From NCBI GenBank assembly GCA_000388065.2, contig KB932201.1: a DNA stretch of 35,660 bases; one strand, 5' to 3'. Positions 12,576 through 35,652 of this stretch are shown in pieces. A program made the position numbers and the translations under genes. This DNA comes from Fonticula alba ATCC 38817. Lineage: Eukaryota; Protista; Nucleariida. The notes beneath the pieces were generated by a model. The model saw only the letters and a list, made by a program, of their open reading frames with translations, ran no database searches and was not told the DNA's origin. Each line of letters begins with the position of its first letter. The first letter of the stretch is position 1.

Positions 12576-13376
12576 GCCAACTTGCAAGGCCGGGATGGTG
12601 GTGGGCGGGAAGGAGGCGAAGAAAAGGAGGAGGGGGGGGGCGAAGATGTTTCCCGTCAGGCGTGTGGCAAGGGTGGATGGTACTGAAAAGAACGACGGTG
12701 CAAGGTGATCTTGTGGCCGAAAAGGCCTGGCCCCTTTGCCATGGGGGGGGGGGGGGGATGGGTCAACGTGGAAAAGAATGGACGTGGCCCCGGCATGGGA
12801 GTCCGCCGGTGACAAGGCGATGCGTTGGCAACAGAGGCAGCCGGCTTGTGGGGTACACATGCCAGGGGGTGCGCCCGGCGCCGACAGAAGACGGGGGGCA
12901 GATATCGCACGCGTACATGGCATACACACGTCTACGTTCGACAAACACACACGCGTGCGCGCACGCACACGCGCACACACGTATGCATTTTCGGAAACAT
13001 ATACAAGGTGAAGAAAACGGGGAGAGGCTCTCATCTCGCAGGGGGGAATGTATTTTATATGGCGGAGGGAGGGAGAGAGAGGAGGAGAGGGACATCTGCT
13101 AAGGCAGTAATACGCGCGCCATGCGGGGGGGGGGGGCGAGGGGGCCGCGCGTGTATGCGTTTATACTCCTGCCGATGCCCTCGCCACCTGTTCTGGCGGG
13201 CAGTGTCATACACTGTGGTCCGGCACCCGGGGTGCATACAAACGGAGAAAGGGGGCGCCAGGGCCAGCCCGGAGAAGGATCTCCTCTCGGCCCTTGTGTG
13301 CACAGGCTAGCAGCATGCACATGGGCATGTGGTGGGCCAGGGGAAAACACCCACACATACACTCACAGGCATACAC

Positions 13377-15538
13377 TTAGTTGGTGGGGGCCGGGGCGGT
13401 GGCAAGCTCGGTGAGCTGGCGCTTCTTCAGGAGGGGCTTCACGTAGGGGATGAAGTCCACACCGACGAAGGGCTGCAGGACGGTCGGGACGCGCAGGCCC
13501 TCCGGGGTCTGGTAGTTCTCGAGCAGGCAGCACAGGGTGCGCTCGGTGGCAGTCAGGGTGGCGTTCAGGCAGTGAACGTAGACCTTGTCCTTGCCGTGCA
13601 TCTGCGATGGGTCGAATGTTGGTGTGATGGCAGTGAGGATGCCGTTGCCATTGTCGTGGTCGGGGGAAGAGCGAGACAGAGAGCGAGACAGAGAGAGAGA
13701 GAGAGAGACAGAGAGATAGAGAGAGACAGAGAGATAGAGAGACAGAGACAGAGAGACAGAGAGACAGAGAGACAGAGAGACAGAGAGACAGAGACAGAGA
13801 CAGAGACAGAGACAGAGACAGAGACAGCAGGATGGGGAGGTTAGAAAGGGAGGAAGAAGAGCAATCCCGGCATGGCAGACGGGCGGACAGGGGGACGGAG
13901 GGAGAGGGTGCGGGGGAGGGAAGATGATCGGTGCCGCAGGAACGCACGGTCTTGTTGCCGTAACGGATCTCCAGGTTGCGGGACTGGTAGTCAGTGCAGT
14001 TGGAGCAGGACACAAGCTCGCGGTAGGCGCCGAAGGCCGGGAACCAGGCCTCAAGATCGAGCTTCTTGGCAGCGGCGTTGTTCAGGGCGCCGGAGGCGAT
14101 GTTGACCACGCGGTAGGGGATCTCCAGAGACTGGTAGAACTCCTCGGCGGAGCCGATCATCTCGTCGAACATCTCCCAGGACTTGTCCGGGGCGCAGAAG
14201 ATGAACTGCTCGACCTTCTCGAACTGGTGCACGCGGAAGATGCCCCAGGTGTCCTTGCCGTGAGCGCCGGCCTCCTTGCGGAAGCAGGTGGACACACCAC
14301 CGTAACGCAGGGGGAGGGACTTGGGCTCGAGCCACTCACCACGATGGTAGGCGGAGATCGGCTGCTCGGAGGTGGCGATCAGGTACTTGTCGGCACCGGC
14401 ACCGGTGATCTTGTAGAGGGCCTCGTCGAACTCCTCCAGCTGGGCAGTCTCGGCCATGATATCCTGGTTCATCATGAAGGGAGTCTGCAGGATGTCGTAC
14501 TGGCGCTTGCGCAGGAAGGCAATGCCATAGTTGATGAGGGCCTGGTTCAGGATGACACCCCAGTTCTTGAGGAAGTACCCACGGTGACCGGCGATCTTCT
14601 GGCCGCGCTCCGGGTCATAGCCGTCCAGGCGCTCGAGAACCTCGAAGTGGAAGAGGAAGTCCTCACGACGGGTGCCCTCCTTGAGCTCCTCGGGCCAGAA
14701 ACGCTCCATGACGTTGTCATCCTACGCCAGTCGCCGGGCCAAGCCCCGCCAGGGGAGGGGGGGGGAGATGAAAGGTGAGCAGCCTGAGCAGCCTGAGCCC
14801 TCCCCGCATATATGTGGGATGGCCAAATGCTCGGAGACAGGGGGGGGGGAAAGGAAGGGCCGAGGGCCGATGCATACCTCGGTCTGCGAATCGGGGACGG
14901 TATCGTGGACCATGTTGCCGAGGGCCTTGAGGCGGCGGTTCAGCTCGGTCTGGGTGTCGTTCATGTTGGTGGTGACATCGGCACGCTGAGCCTCGAGAGA
15001 CTTCTTCTCCTCGAGGAGCTCATCGCAAGCCTCCTTGGCCTGGGTGCGCGAAAAGCCAGGGGAGGGGAGGAGAGGAGGGGGGGGGCCGGCGGGAAAGGCG
15101 AAAGATGGATCAGCGATGGCAAATCATCGAGGTGAGTGAGGGAAGGGAAGTGGGCCGGGTCGATCGGCCAGATGTGACGCACCTTCATGGCGGCACCGAT
15201 CTTCTTCTGGACGGCGTTGATCTGCTTGTTGAACTGGTCAACATCGTAGCGAACTGCCGGAGGGGGGCCGAGGGAAGCAGGAAGGTCAGCGCATGCACGA
15301 GAGACCGGGGAGGAGGAGAGAGAAAGAAGGAAAGCGCCGGAGCAGGGGGCAAGAGCCAAGGCAAAGGGAGAGGAAAGGGAGCGGAGGGGACGTGGCCAGA
15401 CTCACGGGAGATCCACTTGGTGTCAAGCTCGATGATGGCGTCAACCTCGTTGACGTCCTTGCCGCGCTTGCGCTGCCACTCCTTGACGAGCTCGGGGTTG
15501 CCGCCCTTGTCGGCACGAAGAAGGTTGATGTCAAGCAT
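13377..15538 (-). CDS. SARS1: cytosolic seryl-tRNA synthetase (class II), 4 introns
   Basis: [26 protein letters not shown]-terminus, [15 protein letters not shown], motif 2 [41 protein letters not shown], motif 3 [22 protein letters not shown]. Confidence 0.97.
13669..13826 (-). repeat. compound (CT)/(CTCTGT)n microsatellite in the last SerRS intron
   Basis: Tandem agagac/agagag units on the + strand. Confidence 0.9.
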
Positions 15539-18829: not shown

Positions 18830-21800
18830 TCACACGGGTGCATCGCCGACCAGCTCCGGGGACACGCTGGCAGAGGAGACCGAGGGAACCGGCGAAGACC
18901 GATCGGCAGCCGGGAAGGCCGCATCGACCACGACCTTCGGATGCCCGTCACCGCCGGACAGCGAGCTGATCGAGTCCAGCGCAGCGCGAATGCTCGGCTC
19001 GAAGTGCACCGAAGGGATGGCCACAATGCCGGCCTTGGACATCCGGTCGAAGACCGCCTCATGGTAACGCACGAAGTAGGTGTGGATGTTGCGCTTGTCA
19101 TAGGCGGTGGTGACCTCGTACATGATCTGAACAGCACTGTGGGGCATGCAGGGATGAGGGAGGGGGGGGGGAGCCAGGAAACGAGGGGGAGTGAGCACAG
19201 GAAGGGGCGGGCTGGGTTGCCAAGGGAGAGGCAGACCGGCAGGTTGAGGCAGGAGGGAGGGTGTCAACGCACGTGGCATCGATCTCGTGCATACGCTCGA
19301 TGTCGAAGATGATGGCCGTGAAGTGGACTGGGCGCTTGTCCTGGCTGGGGTGGGACTCGAGCTTGCCGAACATCTCCACGCGGTAGAGGCGATCCTTCAG
19401 GAGGCCGGTGTTGGCGAAGTAGAGCGACTCCATGACACGCAGAACGATGACGCCCTCGACCTGAGTGGCCTCCGGGTGGCGAGTCTGGTCCTTGAACTTG
19501 TCGGTGCCGTCAATCTGGCCGAGGACACGGACAACAGGCTTGGTGGCCTCCTTCATGACGAGGCCAATCGACAGGAGGATGGAGAAGAAGACGCCAATCT
19601 GTGTTGTACGCGCGTACGTGCGATGTGTTCGAGGGCAAGGGCGGATGAGCACAATGAACGGGGACAACGACACAAGGGGCAAACAGGATGAAGGAGAGGG
19701 AAAGGGAGGGGAGAGAGAGAGAGAGAGAATGCTGGGGTGTTGCGTACCTCCACCGACACAAGAACGGTCACCAGGAAGGTGGCCGCAGCCATGGCCAGAT
19801 CGGAGTAGGCACGGATGCGCCACATGAAAAAGTAGTCGTGCCACTCGAGCAGGCTGTACGCGGCGTACATGACGATGGCAGCCAGCGTGGACAGAGGGAG
19901 CCACTGGAACATGGGGAGAAGGAAGAGAATAGTGAAGAGCACAAAGATGGAGGCGATCAGGCCGTGCATCGGGGACTTGACACCGACATCATCGGCAACC
20001 TACATGTGTGTGTGTGTGTGTGTGTCGAATGATGTGGGGACCAATGGGTCAGAAAGACGCGCCAAAGAGGCAACACATGAGGCAGGAATAGCGAGCAATT
20101 CCAGCAGCGAGCACGCACAGTGGTACGCGTCATGGACGCAAAGGCCGGGTAGCCACCGAAGAAGCTATTGATGATGTTGCCCACACCGTAGGCCACGAGC
20201 TCGCGGTTGTCATAGACAGGGTAGGAGTTCTTGGTGGCCATATCCTTGGCACTGATGATGGACTCCACGAAGCCGACAATGGTGATGACCACGGCCGACA
20301 TGGTGGCATACGAGACATTGGAGGAGTTGAGCTTCGGCAGGGCCGGCACGCGGAAGCCACCCTCCAGCTCACCGAGGACCGGCAGGCCCTGGTTGTGCAG
20401 ATCCAAGGACCAGACCAGCAGCTCGGAGATAAGCATCAGCACCAGGATCGAGGGGAAGAGCTTGAGGGCCTTGACGTTGGGGAAGCTGCGTCGGAAGGGT
20501 GAAGAAGAGAAACGGCCGGAGCGAGGGCGAGAAAGAGGGGCATCAGCGCATGGATGACGGGAGGACAGATCGGCAGGGGGGGGGGGGGGGGCGAAGCAAC
20601 CGGACGGCCACCGGGGACAGGGCAGACGCACCGGCCGCGGATGTAGCGGAAGACCAGCAAGGCGCCGAGACCGAGGAAGCTGAAGAGCACCGGCATCCAC
20701 TGGGTCTCGTCAAGGTGCTTGAACACGAAGATGAGCTTTTCCAGGGTGGCGGCCTTGGGATCCCAAGCGGAAGTCAGGCCAAAGGCCTTGGCGAGCTGCT
20801 CGACGAAAACCACGATCGCCACACCGGTGATGAAACCACGGTTGGTAGCACTGAAGTTGATGGGGAGGGGCAGAGGGGAGGGAGGAACAGGCGGGGNNNN
20901 NNNNNNNNNNNNNNNNNNNNNNNNNNNNNNNNNNNNNNNNNNNNNNNNNNNNNNNNNNNNNNNNNNNNNNNNNNNNNNNNNNNNNNNNNNNNNNNNNNNN
21001 NNNNNNNNNNNNNNNNNNNNNNNNNNNNNNNNNNNNNNNNNNNNNNNNNNNNNNNNNNNNNNNNNNNNNNNNNNNNNNNNNNNNNNNNNNNNNNNNNNNN
21101 NNNNNNNNNNNNNNNNNNNNNNNNNNNNNNNNNNNNNNNNNNNNNNNNNNNNNNNNNNNNNNNNNNNNNNNNNNNNNNNNNNNNNNNNNNNNNNNNNNNN
21201 NNNNNNNNNNNNNNNNNNNNNNNNNNNNNNNNNNNNNNNNNNNNNNNNNNNNNNNNNNNNNNNNNNNNNNNNNNNNNNNNNNNNNNNNNNNNNNNNNNNN
21301 NNNNNNNNNNNNNNNNNNNNNNNNNNNNNNNNNNNNNNNNNNNNNNNNNNNNNNNNNGGGGGGGGGGGGGCGTGGCACAGAGAAGGCAGGTGCGAGGGGT
21401 GGCACACGCACCGACAGGTGCCGAGGATGGTGTAGATGATGAGCGGGATGAAGGCCGTGTAGAGGCCAAACACCGGGCTGAGATTGGCCAGACCGGCGTA
21501 GGAGACCGCCTGCGGAATGAGCAGGCAGGAAACCGTGACAGCGCCCAGGAAGTCGATGATGAAGTTGGACAGCGTGTAGTTGGGCAGCCACCCGAGGATG
21601 GGGATGTAGTAACGCGCGCGGCGGCGGAGGTTGGCTCCATCGAGCGGCTCGCCGTACTTGTCGGTCAGCGAGGAGAGGAAGCCGAGGGAGTTGGTCTCGG
21701 CGTCGGGGTTGGGAGCCGACATGTCCGGGGAGCCGAAGGAAGAGGCTGGAACGGCGCGACAGCAGGGGAATCGGGGCGGGGGCGGGGGCGGGGGGCGGAG

Positions 21801-22015
21801 GGAATCCGGCGACTTGGTGAGTATCAATCCCAATGCCAGGAGCATATGGGCCAGGCCAGGCGCGCAGTCGTACCCTGGTAGTCGTCGCCAAGCAGATGGG
21901 CACGCTCGTCGGTCGGAGGGCGGGGCTCCGCCGAGCCGGCATGGTAGTCTGAGGAGTAGGCATCAGGAGCATCCGAGTTGTTCAGGCCCAAATGGGGCGA
22001 GTCGTCGCCGGACAT
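18830..22015 (-). CDS. SLC26/SulP anion (sulfate) transporter with C-terminal STAS domain; middle hidden by a gap
   Basis: RYYIPILGWLPNY, GAVTVSCLLIPQAVSYAGLA..PVFGLY, GFITGVAIV, GFVESI, NRELVAYGVGNI..FFGGYPAFASMTRT, LPLSTLAAIV, STAS motif ESLYFANT and AIIFDIERMHEIDAT. Start has gccgccATG context. Confidence 0.92.
20897..21357. other. assembly gap inside the SLC26 gene
   Basis: N run flanked by G runs. Confidence 1.
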
Positions 22016-22361: not shown

Positions 22362-22447
22362 NNNNNNNNNNNNNNNNNNNNNNNNNNNNNNNNNNNNNNN
22401 NNNNNNNNNNNNNNNNNNNNNNNNNNNNNNNNNNNNNNNNNNNNNNN
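22362..22447. other. assembly gap
   Basis: N run flanked by G runs. Confidence 1.
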
Positions 22448-26021: not shown

Positions 26022-28682
26022 TACGTGCGTGCGTGTATGTGTGTACGTGTGCGTGTGCGTCTACATGTGCGTGTGTCTGTGCATGTGCGTGCATGTGCCT
26101 GAGTGAGCGCATGCCCCCTTTCCATTCTCGCTTCCCCTCTCCTGGGACGTCCCCGTGGCCCGGGGTCCCTGCGCATAATCCGATGAGAGATCTGTCGATC
26201 GTGTGTCCCAGTGGCACCGGTATCGGCGTTTGCCAGGAAGAAGTGCCAGCAAGATCGGCGCGAGGGATGATGCAGCCGAATAGCCCCTTGGTGTTCATGT
26301 TAATCAGGGGATGCCAGAGCCACAGGTCACTTGAGTCTCTGAACGGGGCCCCTTCGAACTACCGTCCGTCATCCTCTCTGGCATGGCAACGGGTCATGAT
26401 GCAGGAAAATGAGGGGCCCCGCGCCTATTCCGGCTCCATGAGCCCGGCGACACACATCCGCGGCAACCGATGGAATTCGCCCGGGTGATTATGCATCCCC
26501 TCGATCGTTTCTATTGGCAGCTCCCTGGCGTATGCTTCAGCATGTGCATATGTGTGTCCCTGCACCGACGCTCCTCCTCAAAGGACACATGCAAGCGCAC
26601 GGATACATGCACACGCACACGCACACGCACACGCACACGCACACGCACACGCACACGCACACACGCATATGTATGCTTCGCTTCAGGGTTTACATACCTA
26701 TGTACTCGCGTAGGCTCGCATCTGCTCGTCCGCGCGCGCACGCGCGCACACACTCCACGCACGCATACCAGGTGAGCGTGGTCTTGGCTGTGTGTGGTCC
26801 CCAGACAAGATGATGGGGGGACGCACCTCTCCCTTTCCCATTCTGCGTGCGTGCATGTGTGTGTATATCCGCATGCATGCGCGCAGGTGCGGACTTCTGC
26901 GCCCATATTGGCCGGCCTTCTCTGGAGGGCCCTTGGCCGGCCTCGAGGGAGAGGGCGTATTCCTTGCTTGTGACAGAGAGAGAGATACATGCAGCCATGC
27001 ATGTGGGGGGTGTTCACACACACACACACACTCTCTCTCTCTCACCAGCTGCAAGGCCGCCAGCCACTGTACACACCGGTCGTTGGATGGACTCAGCCCA
27101 GTTGCACAGGTCGACTGCTCGGCGTCCCTTTCGTTCTCCCTCTCCTGGCGTGGGTTGCCCAGCCGGTCGAGAGGGGTGCACATGCATGTCGGCGCACGCT
27201 GATGTCCTCCTCCCTGTCCCGTGTCTTTGGCAGGCGCGCGCCTGCCTCCTCTCCCCCCGTGGGAGGGGGGGTCCCTGAGAGAGAGCATGGGAGACCGTGT
27301 ATCGTATATGCGCGTATGCGTGCATGTACGCATGCATGTGTGTGTCTATGTGCACGTTTGTGTAGGTGTTTGCACGCGTGCATGTATGTTGTGCATATCC
27401 ATGAGGCCACAGTGAAATGGGGCAACGTCGAGGCTGCCCTCCCCCGCCTCGGCTTCTGTCCCTCGCCTGTGATGTTCTTCTGCATGCTATGCACTGCCGT
27501 CTCCCTGCTCTCCCTGCTCTTCTTCTCTCTCCTCCTCATCTCGACGGCTGTGGCTCTGTGTGCTTTGCGTCATCTCTTTCTGGTGTTGGTCCCACGGCGG
27601 CTGGGTGGTCTCCCCCATGTTCACACAGGTGTACTCGCGCATGCGCGCGTGCCTGCAGCATCTCTCCCTCCTCCCTCCCTTCCTCTCCCTTTCCCTCTCC
27701 TTCTAAGTTTGCCCTGTCGTTCTTACCTCCCACTTTGGTGCCGGTCGCGCCTCCCTCCCCCTTCTTTCTCCCTCTCTCTCCTCCCCCCCTCTCTCTCTCT
27801 TTCCTTCCGTCTTCCCCCCTCAGCACCAGCTGCTGCAGAACCAGCAGCTCATGTCCACCCTTGCGGCCACTCTGCAGCAGCAGCAGCAGCAGCGCCCCGA
27901 CGGCCAGGCTCCCCGTGCCTCCTCCATCGTCCTGGTCTCCAACCTCAAGTACACTGTGACTGAGGCGGACCTGCGCGTGCGTCCCTTCTGCTTGCTCCTC
28001 CATCTTTCTCTTTCTCTCTCTCTCTCTCGGGACGAGCAGGAAGAGGAAGGAGGAAAGGACCTCCCCGTCTCTTGTCATACTGCCATGCATCATATTCACC
28101 TCTCGCACTCCGTCATGTCGTCCCCTCAACGGATGAATCCACACGCATCGGCGCACCACACATTCTCAGGATCTCTTCTCCAGCTTCGGCCCGATCAGTC
28201 GCGTCACCATCTTCCACACTGTTGATGGGCGCTCGATCGGCGATGCTCAGGTGAACTTCCGCAACCCGGTGCACGCCGAGCGCGCCGTTAGCGACCTGTC
28301 TCGCGGGATTGTCCTTGATGGTCGCCAGCTCCGTGTGGCCCTGAAGCCCATGCCGGTGGATGCCTCGGCGGCTACTCCCAACCCGGCGGCTCTCCTCTCT
28401 CTGCTCCAGCCGCTGCTGGCCTCGGCCGCCGCTGGTAGCCGTCAGAACAGCGGCCCCCTTGGCGGCCACTCTGCTGCTGGCAAGGCCACTGTCGCTGCCC
28501 GTCGCCCTGGTGCCGGAAATGCCGCGGCCGGCGCCGGCAAGGCTGGCAAGGCCAAGCCCCGGGCCAACGCCCCTGCCTCGACTGCCGGCAAGGCTGGGAA
28601 GGCTGCCCGCCGTGCCGACGAGCCTCGCACCATGACCATCGAGGAGCTGGATGCCCAGCTGGCCGACTACCACAAGGGTTAA
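25300..28682 (+). CDS. ALYREF: mRNA export adaptor ALYREF/THOC4/Yra1 (UBM-RRM-UBM); exons 25300-25344, 25499-25663, 27824-27976, 28170-28682
   Basis: N-terminal box MNKSLDELL, Arg-rich linker, RRM (IVLVSNLKYTVTEADLRDLFSSFGPISRVTIF...GRSIGDAQVNF), C-terminal box TIEELDAQLADY-stop. All three introns are phase 0 GT-AG. Confidence 0.9.
25974..26034 (+). repeat. (GCGT)n microsatellite
   Basis: About 15 tandem GCGT units. Confidence 0.9.
26609..26664 (+). repeat. (GCACAC)n microsatellite
   Basis: About 9 tandem GCACAC units. Confidence 0.9.
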
Positions 28683-28756
28683 AGCCCAGCTTCGTGCATT
28701 ATCAGGGCATAGGCGCCTATGTGCATGTATCCATGCGCTTACGCACGTACGCACGC

Positions 28757-28794
<38 letters not shown>

Positions 28795-29519
28795 AAGCAT
28801 CGATCGGGCTCCTCATCCCCAGGGGACGCTCTTCTCCCATGGCCCCCAGCGTGTGATGATGTGCCCGTTTGTTGGTCTGTGTGTCCCCCTTCTCCTGCTG
28901 CCCCCTCTCCTCCTACACGCAGTGATCCTGTCAGAGGTAGGGGGGAGGGGCGCGGGGGTCGGAGCCAACTACACGTCAGTCTCTTTCGGTTGGCCTCTGC
29001 CGCTGCCACGTTTCGCCCATGAGTGGTGCCCCCCTCTCCTCTCCCCCCTCTCGGGCGCGGCAACGACTGCCTTCCTCCCTGCGCACCCACGACGCCCTCT
29101 TTCCCCCTTTTCCTCTCTCTCCATCTATCGGATCTTTTTTAATACACATCACAAAGTTTGCACACCGATGCCCGTTGAATGTAGTGTCTTGCTCCCACTC
29201 TCCCCCCCCCCCCGCCCGGTGTGGGAGTTGACCGGGTTCCAGCACGCTCGATCATTCGTGGGCAGTTCAAATCCTGGTTTTTGTGCAGCCTCTTTTTCGC
29301 CCTCCTCCCCCAAGATGGCCAGCTAGCCCTCTCCTCCCGAACATCATTGTCTTTTCTCCTCCTCCCTCGTTTCTTGCCCCCCTTCCCCCCCCCCCCCCCC
29401 GCACCTCTCCCTGTATCTCTCTCGGCCTCGCGTGCTGCTGCCCGCCCTCCCGAGCGCAAAATCCCCTTCAAGCCCCTCCACTCCGCATCCCACCTCCCTC
29501 TTCCCCGACCGTGACTGAA

Positions 29520-32500
29520 ATGAGCCTCCTGTCTCGGTCGGTCCTTCGCCGGGCTCCGTGGCCCCTTTGCCGCCAGATGCTGGGCGCGCCCCGGCCGATG
29601 GCATCAATTGCCGAGCTCCAGCCTCGGCCTCCGGGCAATCTGGCGGTCGGGTCTCCTCAAGGGCTTGGGTCTCGTATGGGCCCCAATTCCTACCATGGAC
29701 GTCCTTTCCACCATCGCTCCCAGCCGCTTGGGGCTGCCTTTTACACCACCAGCACCAGTGCCAGCGGTCCTGGCGCCTCTCCGGATGAGAACTCCCGCAC
29801 TTTGTCCCCCTACAATGATGATGGCGATGGCCATGGCGATGGAAGTATGAGTGAGGGTTTTTTTCTTTCCGCCAGCGAGGAGGAGCCCGAAGAGCACATG
29901 GTCGGGCTTTACTCGCATTCACGCTCCGGCTTCGACCTGGATATGGCCCTGGAGTCGGATCTCAATTCGGATTTCGATTTCGAGTCGGAGCTGGACTCGG
30001 ACCTCGAGTCGGACGTCGAGTCGGATCTCGAGTCGGACCGGGGCTCGGATCTTGAATCACGCTCCGACTCCACCCTGTCCATGGGCTCGGGCGGCATTTC
30101 CCGGCCGGAGCCCGGTGCGGGCCCACATCCCAAGGCTCAATCTGCGGCTTTGGACCATCGAAATGGTGCCGGCCATCTCCCTGATGGACGGTCATCATCT
30201 CTGGGCCCGGGCTTCCGGCGGGATGCTCCGCCCCTGACCGAAGCCCCGCGCTTGAGTTTGCCCTGGATCGCATTCCAATGTGTGGAGCTCGCCCGCGACC
30301 CTGAGTATGGCATGTCTCTGGGAGACATTGCCATGGAATTCGACGTCCCGGCTGACAAACTTACGACCCTCTTGGAGCTGCACACGCCCTATGCGGCGCT
30401 CTTCGACGCGACCGCCAGCGAGTCGGTGGTCAAATACCGACAGGTCCTTGAGATGGCGGCCGCCGAGCCCGGCATCACGTTGGCCGACCTGGCGGCCGTG
30501 GCCGACTTGTCCCTGACCCGTGTGGCGAATCTCATTCTGATCCACCTGCCTGGGCATGCCCTCCTCCGGGGGGATCTGCATGGATTGCCGGCTTGGCTGA
30601 CTGCGCGCATCCGCGTGAACAACTGGCTGGCCGACGAGCTGTCCGGGGCCGACCTCTTTGACACGCTGCCGATCGGCCAGCTGTTTGAGAGTGCCGGCCT
30701 GGTCGAGCGCGAGCTGGTCGGGGCCCTGGCGGCCTTGCGTGCGCAGGAGGCCGCCGAGCTTCTTCTTGAGACGCCGGTCGAGGTGCGCGAGCTCATTGTC
30801 CAAACAGCCGAGGAGGCGGTGACCGCCGCCTCGTTCGGGGATGCCACCAATTCCGACCCCCCCTCTATCCTGGCCCTCAGTGTGCAGCACAACCTCCCAG
30901 TTCATGCGGTCCTGGAGCTTCTCCGCGCGGAGGTCCCGGGCTTCTTGATGCTGGATACGGCGGCATCTTCGCGGGCACCGGAGCTGGCCGAGGCCGTGCG
31001 GCGAATCCTTGTGGATCCCCTGCACTCGCGAGCCATGCTGACCACCCTGCTGGGCTGCTCGGCCTTCGATCTGGACCTCCTGCTCCGGCCTGTGGCCCTG
31101 TCCCGGGCCATGTTCAGCCTGATGCCCGGGGTGGTTGATCGGGTTCTGACCACGGTGCAGGCCACGGCCAGGGATGTGATCGCCAGTGCCGACGAGTCAA
31201 CCGGCCTGGTTTCCAGCCCGAAGCTCGACATCGAGCAGCTGGCCTCGCATCATGACATCAGGCCACACGTTCTGTGGCAGATCCTGACTGGCCACTCGGT
31301 GGGCATCCCGATGCCGCTGCCTTGGCTGTCTCTTGGCCCTGAGCAGCGTCAATTGGCGGATTTACTGGAGATGAATCCGGACCTGTCGGTGGAGGCAGCG
31401 GCCGAGAAGATGGGCATTCCCTTCCGCACGGCTTGTAGCATAGCCACCGCGCCGCCGCTCAGCCTGCCGAAGTACTCCCTGCGTCTCGCTACCCGAGAGC
31501 AGCAGGAATTGCTCAGGCTGGCGGGGGAGATCGTCATTCCGACCGAGCTGTCGGCTACCGACAAGGGGGATGTCCCTCCGGTACCCACTCCCCGGGATTT
31601 GGGTCTGCGTGCCGGGCTGGCGGTATCTCGGGTGATGCCGACATTGGAGCGCTTTGGCCCGGGGACCTTGCCGAATTGGCCGGCCCTGGAAAAGGCCCTG
31701 CAATCCAGCCTGCAGGCGGCCCTGATGGAGTTGACCACCAACCAGGAGCGGCTGCCCTTCTGGAAGATTGCCTTCATGCATGGGTGTTCGGTGTCCTACG
31801 CCCGGCAGATGGTCTTGTCATCCTCCCAATGGGGGACACTCAATGCCTGGCACCGGCTCCAGCACATTTACAAGAGGCCGCCCATCCCCGAGGGGCTCAA
31901 GCAGGATGTGGCACGGCTGCTGGAGCAGGAGCCGGATTTGAGCTTGGCCGTCATGGCCAAGCGGCTGGATGCTCCGCTGTCGCTGGTCCGACGCTCTGTG
32001 CGGTCTATCCGCACGCCGCCCATTCCGCCCGAAGTGCTCGGTCGCGTGACGGACCTGCTCCGGGAAAAGCCCCTAAGTCGCCTTGAGGACGTTGTCACGG
32101 AGCTGGACCTGCCGATAGACCTGGCTCGGCGGGCCTTGCGCGAGAGTCGAGCCGCCCTCCGGGCAACCCCCCTGGACAAGAAGCTGGTCAACGAGGTAAT
32201 GGCGCTGCTTCGGGCGGACCCGACAGTCCGAGTGTCCGATGTGGCCAATTCGTTGGATATCCCGCTGTTTGTGGCGCGACGTGTTGTGCTGCACGTGCGG
32301 CGCACAATTCGAGCATCTCCCCTGCCGCCGGAGCTCATCAACCAGACGATGGCCATCCTGCAGGTCGAGCCAACCATCACCCCGGCCCAGGTGGCCTCGC
32401 ACTTGAATACCTCCGAGGACCTGGCCCGGTGGCTGCTGGCTGAGGCGGTGCGCCTGTCCACTCGCCGGCGTTGGATCATCAACCAAGCCCAAGTGGACCG

Positions 32501-34199
32501 GGCGTTGTATTTGGCCCAGAAGGCCAGCCCACCACTGACGTACAGTGAAATTGCCGAGCAAGTGGGCATCTCCGTGCCCCGCGTGCGAACCATCATCCGC
32601 ATTCACCTGCCCGAGCATCGTCCCGCCCGGCGCCGGGGGCTTCTGGATTCCCTGTCCGACAGTCAGGTCAACCAGGTGTTGGCTTTGGCCCGGAAAACCC
32701 AGCCGGTGCTATATCTGACGGAAATTGCCCGGGAGACTGGGATCTCCATCCGGCTTGTGCAGCAGCTACTGCAGAGGGATATGCCGGATCGTGTTCCCCG
32801 GCAGATGGTCCACACGGGCCCGGAGCTGATTCATCAGCTGTCTCAACTTGTCAACAATTCCAGCTCGAACTCCACGGTGCTGGGCCTGTCTCGCGCCACT
32901 GGGGTAGGCCGAACGCGCTTGCGTCAGATCCTGGCCGAGCACTTCCCCGGGCTGTTGCGTTCGCGTCAGGTGTCCCGGAAGAGTGAGGCCCTGGCCCTGG
33001 CGATGGCCCGACGTCCGGATCCCCCGACGTTGCACAGCATTTCGCAGGCCACCGGCATCGGGAAGGTCACCCTGGCTCGACTGCTCGAGCACCATGTGCC
33101 GGAGTATGCGGCTGCTCGAATGGCTCAGAAGCCCCCGCGGCGCATGGCGCCGGAGGTGATTGCCCGGCTTCGGGACATGGCCTACAATACGCACATGCCG
33201 GTGGTGCAGATGGCCGAGGAGCTGAACCTATCGTTGGGCATTGCCCGGGCGGCGTTGCGCGAGCATGCGCCCGACATGCATCAACACCGTCGAAGCATGA
33301 AGAAGTCGATGTTGCAGCCGCTTTTGCAGGCCATGGATGGCGCCCTTCCCCGGGTCGCGGTCATCAAGGAGGCGGCCGCTCGGGTGGGGATATCGCAGCA
33401 GGTGGCCCGGCGGTTGCTGGCGGCCGAGGGGCTGCTCATGTCGGATCGTCTCGCCCCGGGCGGGGACTTGTATGATGCAGTTTTGCGCCTCGTCAACCCG
33501 GGCTTCAAGGAGATGGGTCTTGGCATTACCAAAGAGAAGGCCGATGAGATGAAGTTCATTGCCAAGGAGCTAAATCTCCGAGTGGAGGAAGTCCGGAAGG
33601 TTTTGCATGCGGCCGGCTTGTATCAGGATGACAACGGCGGCAGCGACTTTGACAGCGCCATTGACCCCGACACCACGAGCATCGACAGCACTGGCAGCGC
33701 CACTGTCACCACCTCTGCCACCAGGGGCAGCAGCAGCAGCAGCAGCGGCAGCGGCAGTGGCGGCGGCAGCGGCAGCAGCAGTTTCGGTGACAATACAAGG
33801 GACTCGAAGGTCGTTGAAGGTGCAGCGGCTAATGGGTCTCCCAGTGCTATGCACATTCATGGAGAGATTCTGTCCATGGCACGGGAGATACCCACACCCA
33901 CTGTCCGAGATATGGCCCAGCGTTTGGGCATGTCGCCTGCACGGATGTCGAGTCTTATGCGGGAGATCTTCCCCGACTTCCAGCAATTCCGGGCCCACCA
34001 GCGGGAGATTCGCGAGGCAGTGGCGATTCTCTTCTGCCACTGGCCGCTGTACTCGGCGGAGACCGGCCGACAGGCCTTCGATGAGGCTATTGAGCAGTTG
34101 GCCGTCGACAACAAGACCGACAAGGCCACCGTGCTTTCGGCCCTTCGCCACGATGTGCCATTGTTATACTATTCCTACTTCCCCCCCTCGTCGCCATAG
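29520..34199 (+). CDS. 1559-aa single-exon protein: mitochondrial-type presequence, acidic repeat, about 22 tandem helix-turn-helix-like units
   Basis: Uninterrupted 4.68 kb ORF. Recurrent motif such as LTYSEIAEQVGISVPRVRTII, LYLTEIARETGISIRLVQQLL, MPVVQMAEELNLSLGIARAAL, PTVRDMAQRLGMSPARMSSLM. The ORF is certain; the function is inferred. Confidence 0.85.
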   Translation: MSLLSRSVLRRAPWPLCRQMLGAPRPMASIAELQPRPPGNLAVGSPQGLGSRMGPNSYHGRPFHHRSQPLGAAFYTTSTSASGPGASPDENSRTLSPYNDDGDGHGDGSMSEGFFLSASEEEPEEHMVGLYSHSRSGFDLDMALESDLNSDFDFESELDSDLESDVESDLESDRGSDLESRSDSTLSMGSGGISRPEPGAGPHPKAQSAALDHRNGAGHLPDGRSSSLGPGFRRDAPPLTEAPRLSLPWIAFQCVELARDPEYGMSLGDIAMEFDVPADKLTTLLELHTPYAALFDATASESVVKYRQVLEMAAAEPGITLADLAAVADLSLTRVANLILIHLPGHALLRGDLHGLPAWLTARIRVNNWLADELSGADLFDTLPIGQLFESAGLVERELVGALAALRAQEAAELLLETPVEVRELIVQTAEEAVTAASFGDATNSDPPSILALSVQHNLPVHAVLELLRAEVPGFLMLDTAASSRAPELAEAVRRILVDPLHSRAMLTTLLGCSAFDLDLLLRPVALSRAMFSLMPGVVDRVLTTVQATARDVIASADESTGLVSSPKLDIEQLASHHDIRPHVLWQILTGHSVGIPMPLPWLSLGPEQRQLADLLEMNPDLSVEAAAEKMGIPFRTACSIATAPPLSLPKYSLRLATREQQELLRLAGEIVIPTELSATDKGDVPPVPTPRDLGLRAGLAVSRVMPTLERFGPGTLPNWPALEKALQSSLQAALMELTTNQERLPFWKIAFMHGCSVSYARQMVLSSSQWGTLNAWHRLQHIYKRPPIPEGLKQDVARLLEQEPDLSLAVMAKRLDAPLSLVRRSVRSIRTPPIPPEVLGRVTDLLREKPLSRLEDVVTELDLPIDLARRALRESRAALRATPLDKKLVNEVMALLRADPTVRVSDVANSLDIPLFVARRVVLHVRRTIRASPLPPELINQTMAILQVEPTITPAQVASHLNTSEDLARWLLAEAVRLSTRRRWIINQAQVDRALYLAQKASPPLTYSEIAEQVGISVPRVRTIIRIHLPEHRPARRRGLLDSLSDSQVNQVLALARKTQPVLYLTEIARETGISIRLVQQLLQRDMPDRVPRQMVHTGPELIHQLSQLVNNSSSNSTVLGLSRATGVGRTRLRQILAEHFPGLLRSRQVSRKSEALALAMARRPDPPTLHSISQATGIGKVTLARLLEHHVPEYAAARMAQKPPRRMAPEVIARLRDMAYNTHMPVVQMAEELNLSLGIARAALREHAPDMHQHRRSMKKSMLQPLLQAMDGALPRVAVIKEAAARVGISQQVARRLLAAEGLLMSDRLAPGGDLYDAVLRLVNPGFKEMGLGITKEKADEMKFIAKELNLRVEEVRKVLHAAGLYQDDNGGSDFDSAIDPDTTSIDSTGSATVTTSATRGSSSSSSGSGSGGGSGSSSFGDNTRDSKVVEGAAANGSPSAMHIHGEILSMAREIPTPTVRDMAQRLGMSPARMSSLMREIFPDFQQFRAHQREIREAVAILFCHWPLYSAETGRQAFDEAIEQLAVDNKTDKATVLSALRHDVPLLYYSYFPPSSP
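29952..30058 (+). repeat. in-frame 12-nt tandem repeat (gagtcggayctc-like) encoding an acidic (E/D)SD(L/V/F) tract
   Basis: Encodes ESDLNSDFDFESELDSDLESDVESDLESDRGSDLES. Confidence 0.85.
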
Positions 34200-34590
34200 A
34201 GCAGGAGCTGGGTTTTGGCCGGTTCCATGCTGATTCAAGTGCTTCTTTTGCTTTCTCTCTCTCTCTCTCTCCCTCTCTCTCATTGTCCCCCTTCCCTCCC
34301 CCATGTCGTGTTGGCACATATGTGCATGTGCATGGATGAATATAGATTGTTACATGTTCTTCATGTGGCACACGAGCTCTTGAGGTGGGGGACGATGTTT
34401 TGGATGTATTTTCCTGGCCAGATGTGGTGGGGGCGATATTGGTACGCCACTTTCGCTCACTTCTCTCTCTCTCTCTCTCTCTCGCTTCCTGGCCTGTCCC
34501 GCTCCTCGGGGCAGAGGACGGCACATTGAAAGGCGTGAGCGCATGGGGCCGAGAGGGGAGGAGGGAAAGCCAAGTGGTAGGAGAGCCGGT

Positions 34591-34853
34591 CTACACGGTG
34601 CGGCGGACTTCGAAGAAGCGCTTGAGGAAGACAAACTGAACAACGACCACCAGCAGCAGGATGACCAGCTGAGCGATGGACCAGTACTTGATGCGAGAGT
34701 TGGAGGACTCGGCCGTGCTCCGATGGGTGGCCTCACGAACGCGCAGGTACCGCACCGACTCGCGAATGGCCTTCGAGCCGTGGAGAAGCTCATTCAGCTC
34801 GGCCTCGAGCTGGGGATCACGAGAGACTACGAGGAGGCGCAGGAAGGGTGCGT

Positions 34854-34889
<36 letters not shown>

Positions 34890-35652
34890 AGGGGGGGGGG
34901 AGAAGGCCCGGGGGCGGTTAGAGTGATGCGAGCGCCTGGGCGGGGGAGGCGGTCGCGGGAGGCGAGGCGGGCGGGTGGGGCGGGAGAACGGAGTCCATGT
35001 ACCATTCTGGTTGTTGCGGCGCGAAAGGGGATCCGTGCGGACCGTGAAGGAGAGGATCTTGCGCGTGCGCGAAGACAGGCGGTTGCTGAAGCAGTAGCGG
35101 TAGCGGTTCTTGCCCGGAGTATCGGAGTCATTCTCGGAGGAGGTAAAGGCGAAGGTCTCGGAGGTGGCCTTCTCCGTTTGGTGGAGGATGTTGCTGGAGG
35201 GGGAGTAGAGCTGCACGTGTGCATGGGGGCGATGGGGAGGAAAAGCCGTCCCAAGCACCAGCAACGACAGCAGCGACGGTGGCAAGTGTGTCAGGGTACA
35301 GGGCGGCAGACGGCATGCCAGGGGCGAGGCTCGCCACAAAGGGGGTGCATGGGAACGCACATAGAAATCCACATCCAGCTTGCCGCCCTGGGTCACCTCG
35401 AAGGTGACACTCATGCGATCGCCGGGGGACAGCTCCTCAAAGAAGCAGCGCTCCTCGTTGGGGCCGAGGATCAGGGTGAAGGCCGAGGTGAAGCTGGGCC
35501 GATGCAGGGGAATCCGGGCGTTAGAGATGCGGCAAGGGGAGGCCAGGAGGGTGCGCTTGGCTGGAGGGGGGGGAATACCTGACTAGCGACGCGATCAGCA
35601 TCGTGAACAGCAGCACCAGGCGTCCCAACCGGAAAAGGGGCGAGGAGGACAT
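34591..35652 (-). CDS. TMED2: p24 family cargo receptor, beta subfamily (TMED2/Emp24), 3 introns
   Basis: Signal peptide MSSSPLFRLGRLVLLFTMLIASLV; GOLD domain EERCFFE...FEVTQGGKLDVDF...YRYCFSN; coiled coil YLRVREATHRSTAESSNSRIKYWS; TM helix and tail FLKRFFEVRRTV-stop. Confidence 0.92.

Follow-up and report, generated by a model that had tools for sequence, protein, structure and literature searches.

The window analysed here, 35,660 nucleotides of contig KB932201.1 (GenBank assembly GCA_000388065.2) from the nucleariid Fonticula alba ATCC 38817, raises a simple question: what does the long open reading frame (ORF) towards its downstream end encode, and on what would the product act? The ORF runs on the plus strand from its first ATG at 29520 to a stop codon ending at 34199 and specifies 1559 residues (1559 codons plus the stop). 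An earlier note on the same DNA gave exactly these coordinates, and read the product as a giant repeat protein of helix-turn-helix (HTH) units with a mitochondrial-type presequence. We find that this product, called here the HTH-repeat protein, is a head-to-tail chain of some 15 to 20 HTH units and, with a probability of about 0.6, we read it as a genuine F. alba gene product, a very long tri-helical HTH array whose C-terminal array would serve as a modular nucleic-acid reader.

The repeats themselves are significant by a unit hidden Markov model (HMM), by leave-one-out recovery and by shuffling. By eye we arrived at the same 22 candidates that had been counted before, and an HMM seeded on the 11 clearest recovered each seed unit when that unit was left out, at E 2e-4 to 1e-12. 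The model also found three non-seed units in the N-terminal half, at residues 306-351, 442-478 and 606-643 (first-pass E 8e-9, 0.03 and 1.5e-3 respectively); the corresponding values after iteration, 1e-15, 5e-11 and 1e-8, are circular, as iteration adds these units to the model. Real units of that half score 22-44 bits, against never more than 3 bits in 300 shuffles of the same half. With units of a paralogue added, hhalign supports unit 1 at E 5.5e-5 and units 20, 9, 8, 6 and 22 at E 0.002-0.06, in each case in the correct register of helix 2, turn and helix 3, and gives no support to candidates 3 and 5. The tally is therefore 14 solid units, 1 good, 5 marginal and 2 unsupported, which makes 22 an upper bound. 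A unit is about 52 residues long and the spacing in the central array is 47-58 residues, in line with the 45-55 estimated earlier; pairwise unit identity is 15-37%, and the units are old.

That these repeats have the HTH fold was likewise claimed in the earlier note, and both profiles and models bear it out. The whole protein exceeds the Pfam cut-offs for HTH_24 (52.7 bits against 21.9), Sigma70_r4 (36.6 against 24.1) and HTH_23 (28.0 against 24.6); 5 of 14 single units match HTH_24 on their own, unit 14 scoring 23.8 bits. A profile of the unit matches solved HTH proteins of the IclR, CENP-B, AsnC/Lrp, LacI and sigma-factor types, the best being 9sgv_A at E 6e-5. We modelled three units (residues 985-1151) with AlphaFold, using an alignment of non-overlapping three-unit blocks from the HTH-repeat protein, its paralogue and metagenomic arrays. 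The model has a predicted local distance difference test score (pLDDT) of 87.6 and a predicted template modelling score (pTM) of 0.56, and each unit in it consists of helices of about 13, 8 and 11 residues with the turn between the second and third; the first unit has helices at 5-17, 24-31 and 35-45, a pattern repeated in the next two. No strand that could form a beta-hairpin wing after helix 3 is predicted either here or in a single-sequence model of residues 245-1375, helix 3 being followed instead by a Pro cap and a linker. Judged by sequence profiles together with a confident predicted model, the units are genuine tri-helical HTH modules.

Structural comparison with VIA-align places single units on the HTH heads of NiaR, TtgV, Lrp and IstA at a root-mean-square deviation (rmsd) of 1.2-3.0 Å and a Z of about 6. 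When two or three units are compared with the tandems of Tc3, Cdc5/c-Myb, DUX4 and Pax, Z is 5.8-6.6 and the rmsd rises to 9-12 Å; the module is therefore shared with these proteins and the geometry between modules is different. Matches to the three-unit model among AlphaFold DB clusters and in the ESM Atlas are tandem-HTH proteins, and three of the AlphaFold DB matches carry A0A058Z... accessions, which we take to be F. alba entries. A Foldseek search of the same model against the PDB returned nothing at E<0.001 and nothing below E 0.07.

The arrangement of the ORF, on which the discussion below depends, is as follows.

29520-34199, plus strand: whole ORF; RNA-library contigs identical and unspliced over 30245-34250; GC content at third codon positions (GC3) 0.74-0.85 from about 29880 on.

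29520-29699, plus strand: leader, residues 1-60; residues 1-31 hold 5 Arg and no Asp or Glu; GC3 0.60.

29700-30251, plus strand: low-complexity spacer, residues 61-244; a Pro/Gly/Ser stretch, then an acidic Ser-Asp/Glu repeat of DLESD type (the Ser-Asp tract); net charge -23.

29976-30052: tandem repeat of 12/24/36 nucleotides within the spacer.

30252-31874, plus strand: N-terminal array, residues 245-785, nine candidate units; net charge -23; units 2, 4 and 7 solid, 1 good, 6, 8 and 9 marginal, 3 and 5 unsupported.

31875-32471, plus strand: sub-array A, units 10-13, residues 786-984; short units of 47-52 residues with R-(T/A/S)-P-(P/L) linkers.

32472-33458, plus strand: sub-array B, units 14-19, residues 985-1313; canonical units of 53-58 residues, helix 3 being followed in each by an h-P-[DEG]-h cap and a basic linker.

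33459-33635, plus strand: unit 20, residues 1314-1372, marginal; hhalign E 0.002, in register; Sigma70_r3 at E 2e-4 for the piece 1314-1559.

33636-33839, plus strand: Ser/Gly-rich low-complexity linker, residues 1373-1440; GCA/GCAGCG repeat at 33727-33781.

33840-34196, plus strand: C-terminal pair; unit 21 (residues 1441-1494) solid, 66.6 bits, leave-one-out E 1.8e-9; unit 22 (residues 1495-1559) marginal, hhalign E 0.06, in register.

Sub-array B contains the best HTH matches within the protein. The units of sub-array A resemble one another (mutual identity averages 32%) more than they resemble those of sub-array B (17%). The N-terminal half, searched alone, matches no Pfam family. As the earlier note had observed by eye, nothing catalytic is present: no catalytic family is found among the Pfam matches of the protein, and on that ground we rejected its identification as a transposase or other enzyme. 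We also set aside an identity as an SD-repeat adhesin, as the NCBIfam matches to SdrC, SdrD and ClfA fall on the Ser-Asp tract and are only compositional.

Is this long frame expressed? Two RNA libraries of this organism, dating from 2012, contain contigs that follow the sequence from 30245 to about 34250 with neither a mismatch nor a joint; the body of the ORF is thus present, unspliced, in RNA-library contigs. Across the ORF the RNA word depth is 1-5.6, roughly 20-fold below that of the neighbouring emp24/GOLD gene, at about 100, whose contigs extend into 34391-34600; such uneven depth argues for RNA over DNA carry-over. No RNA contig covers 29468-30203, and none of the listed RNA runs holds 29480-30250, while four of them hold 38-58% of the ORF body. 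Depth declines toward the 5' end, and 5' dropout through 3' bias is therefore possible. In the raw RNA reads of "organism B" (runs X23 and X24) the gene is uncovered except for poly-C artefacts. A run of about 20 C at 29380-29400, in the putative 5' untranslated region, draws poly-C read artefacts from unrelated RNA runs.

Composition helps to define the 5' end. The frame is open already from 29283 to the stop, no intron is visible in it, and the ATG at 29520 has an A at -3 and is preceded by a poly-pyrimidine tract with a three-codon upstream ORF. GC3 is 0.60 over residues 1-120, against 0.74-0.85 further on (0.78 for the body), and a codon-usage score is slightly in favour of frame 0 from 29520, strongly so from 29880, and against it ahead of the ATG. 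By GC3 and codon usage, the coding region certainly reaches further upstream than the RNA coverage does, and its start is probably the ATG at 29520. The window as a whole is GC-rich, at about 0.6-0.69 outside gap-affected bins (the genome is 63% GC), and the apparent low-GC bins in its composition profile are due to four runs of N. As a separate observation, 47-89% of sampled words of the gene are present in soil and sediment metagenomes (runs X6 and X11), and F. alba or a near-identical strain is therefore present there.

How might such a chain work? Each unit opens with helix 1, whose hydrophobic face has the pattern LLxLA; a Pro-rich loop leads on to helix 2 (LxxIAxxL), and a G-h-S/P turn to helix 3 (xxxVRxhLxxh). 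In the canonical units an h-P-[DE]-[YF] cap follows, and then a linker rich in Arg. In column statistics over 26 units and 49 match columns, hydrophobic positions in all three helices and Arg35 are conserved, and the turn Gly is present in 18 of the 26 units. At helix-3 position 5 Arg stands in 14 of 25 units, and 60% have Arg or Lys. A Pro two residues past helix 3 is nearly invariant (18/19) and is followed by D/E/G and an aromatic residue, then by the Arg-rich linker. The full h-P-[DE]-[YF] cap occurs in 8 units of the HTH-repeat protein and in 10 of its F. alba paralogue, H696_00212, against a shuffle mean of 0.15-0.25. Column entropy is highest at helix-3 positions 1-3 and 6, which is where canonical HTHs touch bases. 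Net charge divides the protein, with +25 in the C-terminal array, -23 in the N-terminal array and -23 in the Ser-Asp tract ahead of it. On account of this charge and of the column statistics, and with the N-terminal array acidic and lacking a Pfam HTH, we read the C-terminal 11-12 units as the putative nucleic-acid-binding part; the N-terminal half is probably a degenerate, non-binding extension.

In the model that we propose, the eleven or so basic C-terminal units (residues 786-1313 and 1441-1494) would lie along an extended nucleic acid, most likely double-stranded DNA, with helix 3 of each unit entering the groove and the backbone gripped by the conserved Arg at helix-3 position 5 and by the basic linkers. 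The hypervariable helix-3 positions 1-3 and 6 would give each unit a local preference of its own, as in the Myb R2R3, Tc3, Pax and Psq tandems but at much greater length. The Ser-Asp tract and the degenerate, acidic units of the N-terminal half, which probably make no contact with nucleic acid, may instead serve to dock partners or to mask the basic array. From the sequence features described, nucleic-acid binding by the HTH-repeat protein appears quite likely and, if it does bind, the ligand is somewhat more probably DNA than RNA.

Several points weigh against this reading. The inter-unit geometry is only moderately confident (pTM 0.56), and the single-sequence AlphaFold model of residues 245-1375 (1131 residues) reaches a pLDDT of 45 and a pTM of 0.25, so that only its all-helical pattern is usable. 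A structural Z of about 6 is one that common helical arrangements can also give. The acidic half of the protein has no Pfam HTH match, and HTH and winged-helix domains are also known to bind RNA or proteins. Lastly, the RNA depth over the gene is low and leaves room for DNA carry-over in the libraries.

Relatives of the protein are few. A phmmer search with residues 245-1375 against 1.84 billion representatives (E<=1e-3) gave only seven matches, the best of which, over four stretches at E 1.7e-9, is H696_00212; this paralogue maps to the same F. alba assembly, GCA_000388065.2. In H696_00212 the unit HMM of the HTH-repeat protein matches 13 units with the same Pro cap, at a unit identity between the paralogues of only about 24%. 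Both proteins are built on a unit of about 50 residues comprising helix 1, a Pro loop, helix 2, a G-h-S turn, helix 3 and the h-P-[DE]-[YF] cap. Within the Fonticula family the HTH-repeat protein is the longest (1559 residues, 15-20 units) and adds the acidic degenerate N-terminal array, the Ser-Asp tract and the short-linker sub-array of units 10-13. As these matches indicate, it is a member, the largest seen so far, of an undescribed Fonticula family of tandem-HTH genes. The term undescribed, used already in the earlier note, holds to the extent that the literature searched contains no description of such a family, and neither Pfam, NCBIfam nor the 1.84 billion representatives gave a full-length match to a characterised one. 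The 1.84 billion-protein search returned no self match, and an exact look-up of the translation from eleven alternative Met starts found no match in the protein collection. Word-indexed searches with the whole array, the C-terminal array and the paralogue found only the paralogue itself, the index being swamped by or too insensitive for repeats.

The six other phmmer matches, the only ones outside Fonticula, are tandem-HTH arrays of 280-620 residues. Two of them look haloarchaeal, and two others sit among short ORFs in phage-like contexts, one adjoining a RusA gene. Three of the six, the metagenomic arrays P0002, P0005 and P0007, carry the same Pro cap after helix 3 as the Fonticula units (RHRPDL, RIDPDA and RNRPDL respectively). 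P0002 (L002, 6001-6840) lies among short unannotated ORFs with DUF4145 and DUF2806 neighbours and P0005 among short unannotated ORFs on a contig that carries the RusA gene, which suggests prophage or phage regions; the 1.6 kb contig of P0007 is too short to judge. The three may represent an undescribed phage multi-HTH family related to PHROG 323 and PHROG 14131. The C-terminal array matches PHROG 14131 ("DNA binding protein") at a whole-protein E of 2.9e-6 and PHROG 323 ("transcriptional regulator, D5-like") at 1.1e-5, no single stretch being significant, and H696_00212 matches PHROG 323 at E 9.5e-18. Language-model neighbours are Bacteroidota multi-HTH/DUF7317 clusters, at lead-level scores only. 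Since tblastn against phage genomes gave no match, and per-unit scores to the prokaryotic and phage arrays are no higher than those to generic HTH proteins, we limit our claim to a shared architecture and a possible common origin, as opposed to homology or transfer. The existence of these arrays nevertheless means that the tandem-HTH architecture is not unique, and the earlier statement that such HTHs occur as one or a few copies was too strong, given that proteins in prokaryotic and phage contexts carry from 5 to more than 10 tandem units.

Comparison with better known systems delimits what is unusual here. With the Myb/SANT proteins (c-Myb R1R2R3, Cdc5/CEF1, SNAP190), with Tc3 and Pax and with the Psq domains of Pipsqueak, the HTH-repeat protein shares tandem tri-helical HTHs of about 50 residues on short linkers, an arrangement that in those proteins reads contiguous DNA; those, however, have 2-5 units as opposed to 15-20, and the geometry between units is not common to them (rmsd 9-12 Å). 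The Myb Trp triad is absent, there being no conserved Trp column among the 49, and there is no Pfam match to Myb, Psq or paired domains. The Lrp/AsnC (HTH_24), IclR and Sigma70 region 4 heads provide the best sequence matches and the best single-unit structural matches (for Lrp and TtgV, an rmsd of about 3 Å over 46-54 residues), but, unlike these proteins, the HTH-repeat protein has no predicted wing and no effector or dimerisation domain, and carries many units per chain. The proteins of PHROG 323 and PHROG 14131, those of DUF7317 type from Bacteroidota and the metagenomic P0002-P0007 proteins have head-to-tail HTHs of the same period, but with 5-11 units in 280-620 residues and in prokaryotic or phage-like contexts. 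The likeness to PPR, OPR, HPR and mTERF proteins is one of possible functional analogy only, these too being lineage-expanded modular repeats, many with organellar leaders; their solenoid motifs are of two helices (35 residues in PPR, 38 in OPR) or, in mTERF, about 30 residues, as opposed to the self-contained three-helix HTH of 52 residues seen here, and the HTH-repeat protein has no Pfam match to any of these families, with nothing for PPR or mTERF at E<=1. The "helix-turn-helix repeats" of trypanosome mtTF1 were considered as a precedent and rejected, being a generic helical solenoid.

Where the protein acts is the point on which the explanations divide. A mitochondrial location falls a little short of an even chance, and the fuller proposal, that an N-terminal presequence directs import and that the target is the mitochondrial genome or its transcripts, the protein belonging to a modular organellar family analogous to PPR, OPR and mTERF, is tentative. 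Residues 1-31, with 5 Arg, no acidic residue and an abundance of Ser, Leu, Ala and Pro, make the leader look like a mitochondrial presequence, and to this extent the composition fits what was first claimed for it; an R-x-M|A-S sequence at residues 25-29 may correspond to an R-3 cleavage motif. In the long frame no ATG precedes the one at 29520, which has an A at -3, and frame 0 has the best codon score from there and the worst upstream. Lineage-specific expansion of helical nucleic-acid-binding repeats is, moreover, typical of organellar gene expression. However, the leader-coding part is in no RNA contig and no listed RNA run, its GC3 is 0.60 as opposed to 0.78 in the body, and N-termini rich in Arg, Pro, Ala and Ser would arise easily at 63% GC. 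The leader is followed by an acidic low-complexity tract of about 180 residues, and H696_00212 has an annotated N-terminus unlike a presequence, in which three of the first 10 residues are Asp and a KRPR occurs, although the first exon of that gene depends on a predicted splice, possibly an erroneous one. Our literature search yielded nothing useful on the Fonticula mitochondrial genome. The furthest extension of the mitochondrial proposal is that Fonticula evolved organelle-targeted readers of HTH units with a per-unit helix-3 code, possibly from a prokaryotic or phage tandem-HTH protein of its bacterial prey, such that a 20-unit protein would read 60-100 nucleotides or more, or would coat the mitochondrial genome; we regard this as unlikely.

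A nuclear location is also conceivable, with the odds somewhat against it. In its specific form, which we hold to be doubtful, the protein would bind DNA in the nucleus and belong to a rapidly evolving family confined to the species, made up either of transcription factors or of repressors or binders of repeats or mobile elements, following a logic like that of KRAB zinc-finger arrays or of CENP-B/Myb-type proteins derived from transposase HTHs. The units are most similar to the HTH heads of transposases, resolvases, sigma region 4, IclR and AsnC, and the UniRef name of H696_00212 is "Transposase IS30-like HTH domain-containing". The acidic Ser-Asp/Glu tract ahead of the array is like an activation or chromatin-protein region, the KRPR of H696_00212 resembles a nuclear localisation signal, and the contact positions are hypervariable on a conserved scaffold. 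Set against this are the N-terminus of the HTH-repeat protein, which as translated resembles a presequence and not the start of a nuclear protein, the lack of a classical nuclear localisation signal in it by eye, and the lack of a transposase catalytic domain in the protein or nearby.

It is improbable that the units have lost DNA binding and that the array is a scaffold that binds RNA, or proteins alone, and offers a platform within, for instance, a ribonucleoprotein or a complex associated with the ribosome: HTH units that work without binding DNA are known (the SelB winged helices on SECIS RNA, ScpB on ScpA), the structural matches include SelB WH2-4, ScpB and the Myb repeats of spliceosomal Cdc5, 11 of the 22 candidate units are net negative (eight of them in the acidic N-terminal half that has no Pfam HTH match) and inter-unit identity is only 15-37%, but the C-terminal units keep the HTH signature (turn Gly, Arg at helix-3 position 5) and basic linkers, their array has a net charge of +25, and the best sequence matches are all to DNA-binding heads.

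The genes adjoining the ORF are ordinary nuclear genes. Downstream lies an apparently intron-containing emp24/GOLD (p24 cargo receptor) gene at 34350-35414 on the minus strand. Upstream, an ORF at 28251-28682 on the plus strand has an RRM-like start and a Gly/Ala/Lys-rich tail with a weak FoP_duplication match (E 0.006), and is probably the last exon of an RNA-export adaptor of ALY/REF or FoP type. Intergenic (CA)n and (GT)n microsatellites stand on either side of the HTH-repeat ORF, at 28752-28792 and 34848-34889. Elsewhere in the window, 13363-14709 on the minus strand encodes a class II aminoacyl-tRNA synthetase core (tRNA-synt_2b, E 6.5e-38) and 20436-21845, also on the minus strand, a sulfate permease fragment (E 3.6e-23) broken by an assembly gap. 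The four N runs (3416-3627, 4100-4729, 20897-21357 and 22362-22447) total 1389 bases.

HTH domains are the commonest DNA readers and, to our knowledge, nearly always come singly or in pairs; long arrays within a single chain are the province of zinc fingers, TALEs and PPRs. Three features are unusual here: one chain has 15-20 modules, the family has expanded in a single eukaryote, and the literature searched contains no description of it. The locus shows the largest family member, the split of its halves into acidic and basic, and the prokaryotic and phage look-alikes. What emerges is a family of eukaryotic proteins, with as many as about 20 HTH units, in which a conserved scaffold carries variable contact positions and for which weak look-alikes occur only in phage and prokaryote arrays; an architecture of prokaryotes or phages could have expanded here in an amoeba that feeds on bacteria. 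Should the protein be nuclear, the family would be a lineage-specific one of transcription factors or repeat binders, which is less far-reaching though unusual all the same. Were each unit to read a few bases, the protein would constitute a new natural modular reader of DNA (or RNA), and if the leader is real, it would represent a fourth structural solution to the management of an organellar genome, after PPR/OPR/HPR and mTERF, in a lineage sister to Fungi.

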